DNA from: Macrostomum lignano
Lineage: Eukaryota
NCBI GenBank assembly: GCA_002269645.1
Contig: NIVC01002699.1
Coordinates: forward strand, 72,791-136,790
Direction of reading: 5' to 3'
Length of the DNA stretch: 64,000 bases
Below are positions 28,001-34,000 of the stretch, piece by piece (within the stretch, counting starts at the first letter, position 1; every line of letters begins with the position of its first letter). The translations under genes were made by a program, and so were the position numbers. A model generated the notes under the pieces. The model was not told the origin of the DNA. It made no database searches and was given only the letters and a program-made list of their open reading frames with translations.

Positions 28001-31000
28001 CAAATCCAGACTGAGAGAGTCAGGGGATGTCAAATCCAGACTGAGAGAGTCAGGGGATGTCAAATCCAGACTGAGAGAGTCAGGGGATGTCAAATCCAGA
28101 CTGAGAGAGTCAGGAGATGACAAATCCAGACTGAGAGAGTCAGGAGATGAGAAATTCAGAGTGAGAGAGTCAGGACAAGAGAATTAAAAGAGGAGAGTGG
28201 GAATGACAATGGCAGAAAATCAGAATTAGGGACGGCAGATTTAACAGGCTATCAGAGCGCGCCAGCTGGCATCATAAACTACGGGAGCTGGGGATGACGC
28301 CGGCCGCCGCCGCCGCAGTCTCCTAAAAAAGCGCAAACTATACTAAACACAATCGCCTGACAGATACACCTCGCGTTAGCTCACGACACGATCTTTGCGT
28401 CCCATGGTCGCAGCACCGTATACTGTAAGCCTACAGCTTCCTACATCAGTTTGGTTTCATGTTGCTGTTCTAACGCGCGCGGGTCAAGTCCTGGAGACAT
28501 CTACATCTATACAGAGAGACAAAAAACATTGCTTAGGGAAGAGTTATGCTGCATTCCTGCATGCTGCGAGGGTGCAGGCACGGATAGAGATATGGAGCGG
28601 GTGCGTGCTGTAGTTAAGAGAGGGTCTGTCGTTGTTTTTTTGGGGGGGGGGATTCACAGCAATGCGACACGCCTTGATACATGCGGCAGCGCCAGCGTCT
28701 CACACATCAAAACCCTGTTCTGAAGTTTGGCCATAAAACTTATACGCCCAGCACCGCCACCCCCACCGGGAGGTTGGGGAGGCTGGCGGTACTGCATTAT
28801 TACTGTCCCGGCCTCTGCCCAGCGACATCTGGCTAGCGTGAGGGGTCCGCAGCAGCAGCAGCAGCAGCATCATCAATGTTTTGTCGTCGACAGGAATTCC
28901 TTATGGAAGGGTGATCCTTTTTCTGCCTACAAGCTACAATTTTACCTTGGGGGGGTCATGTTTTATTACCCTTGTATTTCGTGTCAAATCTATTTCTGTA
29001 GTCTAAAGATGCGGATGCGCAAGTTCAGATACACTTTTGAGCCTTGCAGAGCCACAAGAAATGACCTCTTGGAAGTCTTCGGGTGCTCCGCAGTCATATT
29101 AACTTCTAGAGTTATCACTGTCACATCCGGGATCTTCTAGAGCCATCAGTGTGATATCCGGGATCTTATAGAGCCATTACTATGACATCCGGAATCTTCT
29201 AAAGCCATTAATCTGCCATCCGTGATCTTTTAAGAGTCATCACTGTGACATCCGGAATCTTCTAGAGCCATTACGTTGACATCCGGGATCTCCTGGAGCC
29301 ATCACTCTGGCATCCGGGCAGGGACTACTCAAACATCGGGACGGGTAACTAGGCAAATCATGGCGAAGTTTTTACGAGGCTGGTTTGTTAGCAGCTGACG
29401 AGACTGGCTGGCTCATTTGTATAGAGCGATACTTTGTTGTCTATGATTATTTGAAGCTTGTGATACCGTTATTTCCACTGCAGTCTAGCAGGGATGCTTG
29501 CATTGTCAAAAACCAGCCTTTAGGATAATGCAATCGTCTATGGTTAAACCATGAGCACATTTATTTATTTTTTCACTTAAACTTCAGGATAATGATTTCA
29601 AACTCGGGATAATGGACGCCTATTTTTAGAACAAAACAGCAAACACCAACAACAAAAGATTAGCGCTATGGAAAGTTAATTGTGCAGTATCAATATGGCG
29701 CAATTGTCATAGTGCCGAAGACCATTACAGATTGCAATTGTTGAAAGTGCAGTTGTTCATAATAAAGATATTCCGACCGTTCATCTGACGACCATCAGAC
29801 ACGCTCACTGCTTCTTGCACGATGGAACTTTGGATGCTGATGTCAGCAGGCATTGTTACTTGACCGTGGGTCGCGGCGCTTTGTCCCATGTTCAACGCAC
29901 GCGACACTGCATCGCTGCATTGTTGCAGGGACTTGTCCCGTTTAACTGCCAGGTAGCGCCGGACCGTGCTCTCGGACTTTTGACCCGTGATAGCCATGAT
30001 CTCGCTCATCGAATGCCCAGCCGATTCCAGGTCTCAAGAAAGTGCAAGAAGTTCAAAAAGTCTTCGTTATCTTTCATGTCCTTCTGAGATGTGGAAAGTC
30101 TTGAGATCCAATTGAGTTCGCTGCTAGATACGTTGGCTAAACTTTCGACAGGCAGATTGCCCCAGTTGATCGGATATGACGTCTGGTTCTCCATGGCCAA
30201 GCGAATGTAGCTATTTACGTTTTATTCTCTCTTTCTCTCCACATCTCCTTCCTTTCCACCCTCTTAACCCCCAGCCTGTTGCAACTTCGTTGTCTATGGC
30301 CCAAACTCCAGTAAACCACCTCAGTCTTTATGTCTCTCTCTCCTCGGTAACCCCTCTCTCCTTTCGATGCCCTTTTTGTCTATGGCCCCACTGAAATTCG
30401 ACAATGTGCGCGCACTCATGAGCCGGACTATTATCCTAAAGTCTCACTTACGAATAACCAACCATTATATTATAGCAGCTAAGTTTCTGGCAGACGCGTA
30501 GGACAAGCTCGATTTTTCTGCTTGTGTTGTTGGCATCAATGCCAAGAAAGTGCAGCGTTGTTGGCTGCAAGTCAAATTACGAGTCCGAACGATTAGCTAC
30601 GCAAGTCCATCTGTTTCCGAAGGACTCGGTTGAGCGAGAGCGATGGAAAAAGGCCCTGCCGAACATCCTAGAGGTAGGCGCTATTTACTATAAGGTAAAT
30701 TGTGCTAATATATTATATGCAAATTTTTCCTTTATTCGCAAGTGTTTTTTCCTTTATTCCGCCTTTCAGTCCGTAACAGATCACATGGGAATCTGCGCCA
30801 AACACTGGCCATCGGACACAACAATGGTGAAAAAGCGACGATTTGAAGCACTAAAGGACCCGCCTTCTATTTTCAATGGTGTTCCTCCGTCTTGCCTGGT
30901 CCAGAACCAAGGTATGACTATACTTTGAATACCTATTTGTACTTTAGACTTTAGCATTTGGTTCATATAATCTAAACTTCCTCAAAGTTCCCACCATAAA

Positions 31001-34000
31001 TGTTTTACATTTTAGAACGCAATAGGGATGTGAGGACGAGAGGTGTTCTCTCTGACGCACGAGGTGGCTTAGCGGATGAATTAGAGGAGTTTCAGCTGAG
31101 CGACACCATATCTTCGTGGAATGGTTTCTGTGACTCCGTACAGGACTCTGAAATAGCCAAACGCCACTCCTTAGTGGTTACATTTTTTCAGCAGGATTTA
31201 TAAATGTTTTCATTGGACTCCAATGGCGACATGCTTATTTGATTATTTATTTCGCCAAATTTTGCTGTTCGCGCCTACATAATGCACACGCCAGTTAGTG
31301 TTCGCGACCTACTTGGATTTCAACCCACGCTGAAGTTTTGGTCGCAACTGGATGCAATTATCGTACGATGCAACAACTCTGAGTTTTCAGTTGAGAACGA
31401 GATTTCGTATTTCATGAAAAGCAACATATTCGCCATGGACAGCGCAGCGCTAGAGATTTCGAATCCAACTATTAAATTCTTGCTTGAAGAGTTAAAGCTA
31501 ACACTGGACTCACCGATGTTTGAGTAGTCTCTGCATCCGGGCTCTTCTGGAGCCATCACTGTGATATCCGGGATCTTCTGGAGCCATCACTGTGATATCC
31601 TGGATCTCATGGAACCATTACTGTGACATCCGCAATCTTCTGGAGCCATCACGGTGACATCCGTGATCTTATAGAGTCATTACTCTGACACAGGTGATCT
31701 TCTAAGAGTCGTTACTGTGACATCCGAGAATTTCTAGAGCCATCACTCTAACATCCGGGATCGTCATAAATTATCACTTTGCTATCTACATTAGCTTAAT
31801 TCACCACAAAGTCCTCCCTGGAAGATAAGTGTCTATCTGTCGCCACTACCATTATGTTGCCTTATCCAAGGCTAAAGCCATATGTCGGCCTTAGCCGTGC
31901 AGAACCAAGAAATGGTTGATTGACGGCTTAATAATCTTCGATTTTACTCGATCGAACTAGTTTAAAACTAGCGAGAGGCGTGCAGAGCCTCCTGATTTGC
32001 CGTGTTTCCAAGAGTCTGCTTCCGCCTGTTTGCCGAATTGATTTTCAAACCCTCAGAAGCTCCGCCTGCTGGTTAAACAGCGGCTTCTGTGAAACAATGG
32101 GGGCACTGTTCTGATTAAATTGTTTTTGCAATTTTCCTTGCACCTGCCCTGGTCTTTTGTGAAGTCTTCTTTGGCTAAATTTATCGCTAAAATTGTTCTG
32201 CGCTCCGGGGTAAGTTTTAATAATTAAAATCTGCTCAAAGAAAAAAGCGTTAAATAAATTTGTTTATGAGGAAATCGTTAAAGAGGAGGAGAACTGTGAG
32301 CAAGCGTGTTTTTTTCTATCAATTCATTTTCTCCAGTCTTGTCAGCAAGGCACTTTGATTGGCATGTCTGATCTTGTCAGTCACACACTTTGATTGTCAT
32401 TTCTGATCTTGTCAGTCACATATTTTCTACATGTACTTCAGTATGTCATTAGATCTTGTCAGACACTTGTCAGACGCTATGGAAAACAAACCCCTTAAGC
32501 ACACCGATGTCTCACCAACAACGGCATCCTCCATGACCCGGAAGTGGAATCTGTCCCGCACAAAGGGACCGTGGTTGTTGTCGCCTTCAACCAGCACTAT
32601 AACAGTTGCCGTGCTGCTCAATGACGGCTCTCCCTGATCCCTGACTCCGGCCACGAACTTGTGCCGATCCTGACGCTCCGATCGAGACGTTGAATCAGCG
32701 TCGCTTGACCGCTGTCTGACCCGATGCTGAACATGGTCGTGTCGTTTAGCCAGAACGTCAGTCGGCTATTTTTACCTTCGTCTCGGTCTTCAACAGTCAG
32801 AGCGAACACTGCAGTGCCCGGCTGAGTGCGTTCGTTCACTCGAAAATGATAAGCCGCCATGGCGAACATCGGCACATTGTCGTTACGATCGAGTACGTCA
32901 ACGGGAACGGTGAGCTCAGCCGTGTTCTGCGGATGGCCCAGGTCGACGCATCGAACGGTGAGTTGGATTGATCCGGCTGTTGGCGAGTCGGTCTCCCGGT
33001 CTAACGATCTCGTGGTGACAAGATTGTAGTGAGCTGAACCGCTTTTCGAGCTGAGTTGCTCTAGGGAGAACTTGTCCAGGTGGTTGGTTAGGGAACAGTC
33101 GACCTTGAAAATGGACCAGAAAACATTTGTTTTCATTTTCTCAATTTGCCTCACCTTACTATTACGGTTTTAATTCAAATCCTGGATATGTTAAGGTCTA
33201 AAAAGTTACATCCTTGACTTTCTCGACGCTACAAACTGAAATTGTTGATCTTCTATCGTCTTATATTCTAGCTTTTCTGGAGTCTATTAAGCTTGATATT
33301 TAATCTCTTGGAGCTTATCAAGTTTACATCCTTGATCTTCTCGTATCTACAACAATGATCTATAGAGTTTTTTATACACTACAAGTTTGATCTTTTGAGT
33401 TAAATTAGATGTCTTTGATCACGTGACCTTACTTAGGTTAAATGATTGATCTTCTGGTTCTATTAAATTTATATATTTGATCTTCAAATGTCCAAAAAGT
33501 CTTTGATATTTTAAAGTTCTGTTGAAATATCCGGGATGTTTCTTCCGAGATGGACGATGGTCCTTCATTTCGGTTCACCACTATCATAGAGTACTCAAAC
33601 AGCATGTTAAACTATCATCCAGCAGTGCACGCACCTGCCCATTAACGCCAGAGTCACTGTCCGTTACAGTCATCAGAGTAACCGTCTTTTTAGCCGGTTC
33701 ATTCTCCGCCACGCTCAGTCGATCCGTCTCGCTGTTGAGCACAATTACCGGCTTCTCATCGTTGACGTCAATCAAACAAATTAACACCTGCGTGTCACTC
33801 TGGCGAGCTGAGCCGCCACCTAGATCCTGAGCCACCACGGTCACGCGGTACTCGCGCTGCCGTTCAAAGTCCAGCGATCCGACTAAGCGAAGGATGCCAG
33901 TGTCCGAGTCGACTGAGAACAGCGATCTGATGCGTGCAGGTGCGAATGCGGGTATCGAGTAGACTACCTGACCGTTTGGACCGGCGTCTCGATCTGTTGC

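Follow-up and report, generated by a model that had tools for sequence, protein, structure and literature searches.

Internally deleted copies are well known in the P superfamily of cut-and-paste transposons, which includes the P element of Drosophila and vertebrate Pdre/THAP9, and interrupted gap repair is their classical origin. Cryptons, whose enzyme is a tyrosine recombinase (YR), have been described without terminal inverted repeats (TIRs). A composite of Mariner and CryptonF, MarCry-1_FO, is known from Fusarium oxysporum, where it has 16-bp TIRs and TA target-site duplications (TSDs), and where four copies are more than 97% identical to one another (PMC3212892; mentioned too in PMC13465315). 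Here we describe a locus in which genes of the P and Crypton types lie between one pair of TIRs. It was found in a stretch of 64,000 nucleotides of the flatworm Macrostomum lignano (contig NIVC01002699.1, positions 72,791 to 136,790), called the window below, and is a 2,215-bp element, bounded by TIRs and a TSD, that sits within a 31-bp satellite at positions 29319-31533. The element is very probably a decayed P-like transposon that contains a Crypton-type relic. Probably, though with a good deal less assurance, it is a dead non-autonomous member of the P superfamily, and the YR unit is nested in its leader instead of forming an integral part of it. Proteins and loci retrieved in the searches are cited by P and L numbers, respectively.

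The element and its truncated transposase gene

An earlier, sequence-only reading of the window had proposed that two head-to-head units are enclosed by 21-bp TIRs and an 8-bp TSD. This architecture is upheld: the two TIRs differ by one mismatch, matches to the TIR number two in the 64-kb window as against none in 100 shuffles, and the divergent start codons are 344 bp apart. Excision of the element together with one copy of the TSD restores the exact 31-bp register of the satellite, whereas retention of both copies shifts the register by 8; the duplication is therefore genuine and is not a by-product of satellite periodicity. The leader of the element, from the left terminus to the ATG of the plus-strand gene, measures 1,220 bp and holds the YR unit. 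No further copy of the element was found within the window.

The plus-strand gene is, as the same reading had it, a spliced THAP gene. Its introns are of the GT..AG type, and the spliced product of 154 amino acids matches the Pfam THAP model (E=8e-8; 33.4 bits, with a cutoff of 23.9) and contains the C-x4-C...C-x2-H and PPSIF motifs. The first splice is also used in the UniProt models of sister copies from M. lignano. The best database match of the protein is a UniProt protein of M. lignano, 96% identical, and the other close matches likewise come from this species; there are four such sister stubs, and M. lignano has at least five THAP-stub copies at about 96% identity. The frame of the third exon runs past two in-frame stop codons up to the right TIR.

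The most informative relative is a Logan contig from a different species (L002), whose THAP domain is 47% identical to that of the window. Open reading frames (ORFs) downstream in this contig match the TNP-like_RNaseH_N model (36.5 bits, cutoff 24.6) and the helix-turn-helix (HTH) model Tnp_P_element, and a match to TNP-like_GBD, at 24.1 bits, is slightly below its cutoff of 24.8. In tblastx comparison the three exons are collinear with L002 at 50%, 66% and 41% identity. The third follows the L002 ORF at 613-1110 as far as the inner edge of the right TIR, and element positions 1706-2197 align with L002 607-1098 at 41% identity over 164 amino acids. The P-like homology goes no further than 31515, the inner boundary of the right TIR; the first 260 or so transposase codons are kept, and the HTH, catalytic and C-terminal regions are deleted along with the entire right subterminal region, down to the 21-bp TIR. 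Judging by this collinearity, the THAP gene is the N-terminal stub of a transposase of the P-element/THAP9 type, consisting of the THAP domain and the linker region. An RNase H-like catalytic domain interrupted by a GTP-binding insertion domain is missing from the window copy, though kept in the collinear L002; the copy is accordingly classified as a non-autonomous derivative, and its assignment to the P superfamily goes through the homology of the N-terminal 260 codons.

The termini lead to the same assignment. L002 opens at base 1 with a terminus that is homologous to the left end of the window element over 64 bp (CAGGGATAACTAAAAC..., also given as CAGGGATAAC...); as a control, the remaining L002 leader scored about 28 on shuffles, with a maximum of 45, to be compared with the alignment score given in Table 1. 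Since this terminus precedes a THAP ORF and P-type domains, the terminus type is tied to a P-type transposase, which excludes hAT. A hAT-superfamily element that captured a THAP exon would indeed share some of the features, as an 8-bp TSD and a CAG-type terminus (CAGGG here) are typical of hAT elements also, and the window copy has no catalytic domain by which the matter could be decided directly. Against this, the similar terminus in L002 lies 211 bp ahead of a THAP ORF that leads into P-type HTH, RNase H and GTP-binding insertion domains, the coding remnant is collinear with the P-type protein of L002 for about 260 codons, and a domain search detected no BED finger or hAT dimerisation domain in any frame of the element. 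We regard a hAT origin as scarcely credible and reject the assignment on the P-type homology of the transposase; taken by themselves, an 8-bp TSD and a CAG terminus would suit either superfamily. The earlier description of the gene as a transposase stub is thus borne out and can be narrowed to the P superfamily by the collinearity with L002 and the P-type domains found there.

A second Logan contig, from an AT-rich organism (L001), contains the sequence TTGAGTAGTCCCTG at positions 10-23, a 14/14 match to the window TIR in spite of the distance between the two relatives. Oddly, the match points away from a THAP ORF, 32% identical to that of the window, which starts 337 bp downstream.

The recombinase relic and its family

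The minus-strand unit is a gutted, frameshifted relic rather than an intact gene. It comprises two ORFs in different frames (30006-30200 and 29725-30009), and the two homologous pieces are joined at a deletion junction, GAG|AC (30033), which shifts the frame. The N-terminal piece is identical, in 54 of 54 positions, to residues 275-328 of P0051, a protein that contains an intact M. lignano YR and serves as the reference for the missing residues; it also gives a tblastx match to L003 88-168. The C-terminal piece is 100% identical over 57-75 amino acids to P0009, P0048 and P0008 of M. lignano, with tblastx matches at L003 1147-1287 and 1503-1562. In P0051 the two pieces are separated by 321 residues (SGDT...NHSIRVC), all of them missing from the relic, which hold the ERGREHL sequence with the box-I Arg, the SKNKSAD sequence with the candidate Lys, and the HxxR motif in NHSIRV. 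The relic fails the full R-K-H-x-x-R-(H/W)-Y set: what is left of it is the Gln position and the Tyr nucleophile, in the last catalytic helices, and the NCTFxNC motif at the C-terminus is also kept. Homology of the two pieces indicates descent from a Crypton/DUF3504-type YR of about 475 amino acids. Of the YR/DUF3504-like gene with its own AATAAA that had been read here, the descent and the polyadenylation signal stand; what remains is not an intact gene, 321 residues being lost and the frame shifted.

The relic by itself matched no Pfam model at E<=10 and nothing relevant in the PDB at E<=10, and a word-indexed search of 5.8 billion proteins returned one candidate and no match. An exhaustive HMMER search with the relic found 'Tyr recombinase domain-containing' proteins of M. 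lignano that are 96-100% identical to its downstream ORF, as well as a full-length relative of 456 amino acids, P0014; four other HMMER matches (P0011, P0012, P0015 and P0019) were rejected as low-complexity or repeat artefacts. A profile of the family retrieved P0029, P0030 and P0032 at E<=1e-64. P0032 scores above all three relevant Pfam cutoffs (DUF3504, 47 bits; QRICH1, 31.9; Phage_integrase, 30.9), P0029 and P0030 above some of these only, and the closest members, P0009, P0018, P0014 and P0022, have sub-threshold Pfam matches only. Compared with the PDB, the family profile matched XerA (E=0.003), with an alignment across box II. The AlphaFold model of P0022, an intact M. lignano paralogue, matched Cre recombinase in Foldseek (E=2.5e-9, 337 alignment columns) with a template-modelling (TM) score of 0.65, normalised to target length. 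The matches to the three Pfam models, to XerA and to Cre are those of the family and not of the relic itself. They mark a genuine recombinase family, with a predicted Cre-like fold, and place it in the CryptonA/DUF3504 type (Kojima & Jurka 2011, PMC3212892).

Intact members carry the R, HxxR and Y residues, and the H/W position is occupied by Gln or His (in most of them by Gln, within TGQKS). A C-terminal motif, (N/S/G)C(T/N/L)F-x-(N/G/S)C(T/N)F, is conserved in the window (29728-29770, minus strand), in L003 (1503-1577), where it is encoded beyond a short 3' intron, in P0013, P0016, P0022 and P0023, and in L008. We know of no Crypton report of an NCTFxNC(T/N)F motif at the C-terminus.

The family is multi-copy in M. 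lignano, with five near-identical proteins in one cluster, the paralogues P0018, P0020, P0022, P0025 and P0039, and the exonised relics P0008, P0046 and P0010. P0039 (UniProt A0A1I8G875, 160 amino acids), in which about 130 N-terminal residues are joined to a C-terminal NCRFENCTF motif, looks from its sequence as though a paralogous YR had undergone an in-frame internal deletion, analogous to that of the relic in the window. P0022 is the solitary intact YR gene of L004, a region of M. lignano contig NIVC01002014.1. It is bracketed by 23-nt inverted repeats (ATTATCATATAGACTAGCGTTTT / AAAACGATAGTCTATATGATAAT), which are unusual for Cryptons, described as they are without TIRs, and is preceded by a 36-nt hairpin; these features, at L004:9617-9745 and 11547-11569, may be recombination sites. 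The metagenomic locus L008 (JGI) has a complete YR gene of 470 amino acids with a 12-nt repeat on both sides.

At L005, a long interspersed nuclear element (LINE) at 6750-9971, with endonuclease and RVT_1 ORFs, ends directly upstream of a YR fragment (10001-10462) that begins at about family residue 106, so the LINE appears, from this arrangement, to have inserted into a YR gene. A DIRS-like origin of the YR, considered on account of the RVT_1 ORFs beside P0037 in L005, was rejected, as the reverse transcriptase belongs to the LINE that interrupts the YR gene.

Nested insertion or family-level composite

A P-type cut-and-paste reaction placed the element in the satellite, as the 21-bp TIRs and the 8-bp TSD show. 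In the further course of events that we propose, a non-autonomous Crypton-like unit would have inserted into the P-like leader, and the YR would not have belonged to the P-like family from the start as its second gene. Interrupted gap repair after excision, perhaps in situ, may have produced the large deletion on the right, leaving the TSD intact. Neither relic would be catalytic, and any movement would have needed a P transposase or a YR supplied in trans. By analogy with the Drosophila P element the window copy, whose right end is just 21 bp, is probably immobile.

Nesting is suggested in the first place by the loci in which one component occurs without the other. Without the YR module the leader of the window element would be about 200-370 bp, compared with the 211-bp leader, terminus to ATG, in L002, which has no second gene. 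No THAP or P homology was found within 10 kb on either side of P0022 in M. lignano NIVC01002014.1, nor within 425 bp upstream of the YR gene at L008; L003 is a 1.77-kb contig with the YR gene alone, and a metagenome scan with the YR profile yielded two short contigs, neither of them with a THAP gene. The sequence-only reading had inferred a composite or two-gene family whose master copy could encode both enzymes; this finds no support in these loci, given the short leader of L002 and the YRs of L004 and L008 without a THAP or P partner. A family-level composite, built like MarCry, would have the Crypton unit as a fixed passenger or functional second gene in the M. lignano lineage and would transpose as one unit through the P-type TIRs, with a full-length master encoding a P transposase and an intact YR, and with the window copy doubly deleted. 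Its strong points are that both relics lie within one intact TIR/TSD pair, that at least five THAP-stub copies at about 96% identity exist in M. lignano, and that a Mariner and Crypton combination with TIRs and TSDs is on record (PMC3212892). The YR-free leader of L002 and the solitary occurrence of YR paralogues and relatives tell against it, as does the stub search, which gave no M. lignano model linking the exon-3 region to a longer transposase; moreover, a right end of 21 bp would mobilise poorly, as in Drosophila P. We see such a family as possible, but distinctly less likely than nesting. Its more ambitious form, an active or recently active two-enzyme family in M. lignano, with divergently transcribed P-type and Crypton genes between one pair of TIRs, in which the YR contributes to the life cycle, for instance by resolving or circularising intermediates, seems to us improbable.

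The deletion in the YR unit provides another line of evidence. In UniProt gene models of a NACHT-WD40 type (P0008/P0046 = A0A1I8JF78, A0A1I8HZ10) and of a polycystin/EF-hand type (P0010 = A0A1I8I9L6), one exon is the deleted YR relic, and in both types this exon begins at D/H-LESAGHS (xAC-CTG-GAA). An AG acceptor before AC-CTG-GAA exists at the deletion junction of the window (cttgAG|AC) and, to judge by the protein sequence (..IRVC-DLES), should be absent from the intact YR gene. Because, on this reconstruction from the proteins, the relic exons need for their starts the acceptor made by the deletion junction, the sequences suggest that the same junction occurs at two or more other loci and that the deleted unit is multi-copy. 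Recurrence, at several loci, of an internal deletion with both ends kept is the mark of a non-autonomous transposon; the NACHT-WD40 and polycystin models that contain it are probably annotation artefacts of intronic or upstream transposon copies. A mobilised composite of the MarCry type could also account for a multi-copy relic with an apparently identical junction. The junction is more awkward for the idea that double-strand-gap repair brought YR DNA into the element, as filler or through a template switch (transduplication), with no insertion by a recombinase. P-type elements mend their excision gaps by synthesis-dependent strand annealing, a process liable to template switches, and both genes have internal deletions with abrupt junctions, in keeping with such a capture. 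The captured piece, however, still has the two ends of the gene together with its upstream region, its poly(A) signal and the motif clusters on its flanks, an anatomy that suits a whole mobile unit reduced by deletion and not a random fragment, and the identical junction is seemingly present at other loci; capture is, in our estimate, very unlikely.

The two components also appear to be of unequal age, a further difficulty for the MarCry-type composite. Private substitutions number three in 92 amino acids of the THAP stub, as compared with the four sister stubs, and none in 129 amino acids of the YR relic. Since about four would be expected in the latter at equal age, the YR unit is probably younger than the P-like part.

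The approximate limits of the inserted module come from short repeats. Crypton termini are expected to bear short direct repeats of 4-6 bp, left by site-specific integration, and neither TIRs nor TSDs. Direct repeats ACTT(T/C)GTTGTCTATG occur at 29431 and 30284, on either side of the relic; direct repeats TTGTCTATGGCCC are found at 30290 and 30376; and the flanks of the relic also carry an inverted pair, CTTTAGGATAAT (29516-29527) and ATTATCCTAAAG (30431-30442). Three of the seven window copies of CCATAGAC and four of the ten of GGATAAT cluster on both sides of the relic, and both motifs also cluster beside the intact YR gene in L004.

Several points weigh against nesting. One genomic copy of the element was examined, the collections searched having returned no other, and neither a P-like copy of this M. 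lignano family with a YR-free leader nor a YR relic outside P-like TIRs was seen; two NACHT-WD40 loci, L006 and L007, whose UniProt counterparts include the exonised relic, contained no copy of the element within the gene and its 10-kb flanks. L002 belongs to another species, and all that follows from it is that the wider family did not have the YR ancestrally. The repeats that delimit the module are short and of borderline significance, and alignments of the YR flanks to L004 and L003 were no better than shuffles, with short motifs only in common. The age argument involves few substitutions and differing comparator copies, and the shared splice acceptor was reconstructed from proteins, the intact copy being known at that place by protein alone. 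Finally, on the analogy of MarCry nested composites can spread, which would make nesting and a family-level composite compatible with each other.

As to the host locus, the element falls between three long minus-strand ORFs with Pfam Cadherin domains (22972-23826, 32618-33154 and 34291-34743), and therefore probably lies in an intron of a cadherin/protocadherin gene. The window also contains a relic of a piggyBac-type transposase at 48059-49833 on the plus strand, where DDE_Tnp_1_7 and zf-Tnp_2 matches extend over three overlapping ORFs in different frames. It is crowded with micro- and minisatellite arrays that yield long spurious ORFs (for example at 9955-10710, 11459-12979, 14107-14802, 16219-17057, 19586-20866, 37892-38396, 52435-52884 and 55129-56622), and the satellite that hosts the element is one among many. 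The features of the element are collected in Table 1.

Table 1. Features of the 2,215-bp element and its flanks, in window coordinates
Feature	Positions	Strand	Remarks
Satellite, left flank	29103-29318	.	TRF (Tandem Repeats Finder) period 31, 6.9 copies; register runs on across the empty site
Left TSD, 8 bp	29311-29318	.	CATCCGGG
Left TIR, 21 bp	29319-29339	+	CAGGGACTACTCAAACATCGG
Left terminus and subterminal region	29319-29382	+	Conserved with L002 positions 1-66; local alignment score 54
Approximate YR module	29431-30447	-	Relic and flanks with repeated CCATAGAC / GGATAAT motifs; limits putative
Two overlapping AATAAA	29560-29569	-	Downstream of the YR stop codon
YR C-terminal piece (DLESAGHS... 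to stop)	29725-30033	-	Other frame; about 100 residues; stop 29725-29727
YR N-terminal piece (MENQ...FLHFLE, 54 aa)	30033-30194	-	ATG 30194; ORF stops at 30006 after 62 codons
Spacer between divergent ATGs	30195-30538	.	344 bp (YR ATG 30194, THAP ATG 30539), head-to-head
Transposase exon 1	30539-30673	+	THAP, first half
Transposase exon 2	30770-30911	+	THAP, second half; C-x2-H and PPSIF motif; intron position common to L002
Transposase exon 3 remnant	31016-31515	+	In-frame stops TAA 31201-31203 and TGA 31240-31242; coding model ends at 31203
Right TIR, 21 bp	31513-31533	-	Inverted copy of left TIR with 1 mismatch (CAGAG...), 20/21 complementary
Right TSD, 8 bp	31534-31541	.	CATCCGGG
Satellite, right flank	31534-31762	.	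Same 31-bp satellite as left flank

On the nested reading, the locus would be nothing out of the ordinary for a genome rich in repeats: one dead transposon sits inside another, in an intron. It is useful all the same, as it documents P-superfamily and DUF3504/Crypton-type recombinase families in a regenerative flatworm model; our literature searches found no published account of either family in M. lignano. It also flags UniProt gene models that include an exonised relic, and the satellite around it allows a clean demonstration of the empty site.

Comparison with known systems

Among described transposons, the P superfamily (Drosophila P, vertebrate Pdre/THAP9) is the closest to the plus-strand part of the element, with which it shares the N-terminal THAP zinc finger, the 8-bp TSD (7-8 bp in the superfamily) and short TIRs; in the relative L002 there are, in addition, a P-type HTH, an RNase H domain that is split, and the GTP-binding insertion domain. 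Like KP, an internally deleted P element, the window copy has lost internal sequence and retained its DNA-binding N-terminus. In contrast to these, it belongs to a flatworm, its 21-bp TIR starts with CAGGG, its deletion goes all the way to the right TIR, and its leader is 1.2 kb long owing to the foreign YR unit. The stub has, unlike KP, in-frame stops; it resembles the truncated P proteins of the KP type and is at most a possible repressor.

The minus-strand part is closest to the animal Cryptons (CryptonA) and DUF3504 proteins (Kojima & Jurka 2011, PMC3212892). Intact members of the YR family have about 450-480 amino acids in a single ORF, with a predicted two-domain fold like that of Cre; each unit is small, at about 1.9 kb, and present in multiple copies, several subfamilies coexist in one genome, there is no THAP or reverse-transcriptase partner, and relatives match the DUF3504, QRICH1 and Phage_integrase models. 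They differ in that most members have Gln (TGQKS) in place of the second catalytic His/Trp and in the conserved C-terminal NCTFxNC(T/N)F; the window copy is, besides, short of 321 central residues.

The composite as a whole is best compared with MarCry-1_FO; the earlier reading knew of no family with TIRs and a Crypton-type YR, but here is one that has been described (PMC3212892). In both cases the TIRs of a DDE cut-and-paste transposon enclose a gene for a Crypton-type YR, and the TSD is of the type of the DDE partner, suggesting that mobilisation was due to the DDE enzyme. YR and DDE transposase genes between one TIR pair with a DDE-type TSD are found in the window copy, where both are relics. 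Here a P-type partner with an 8-bp TSD takes the place of Mariner with its TA; the element lives in an animal, its YR belongs to the CryptonA/DUF3504 type, deletions affect both genes, and one copy was examined. The element would be a P and Crypton analogue of MarCry only if it proved multi-copy as a unit, and otherwise represents P-like and Crypton-like families of a flatworm, nested and decayed. Were the composite a propagating family with intact genes, it would be the second known fusion of a DDE transposon with a Crypton, and the first in animals.

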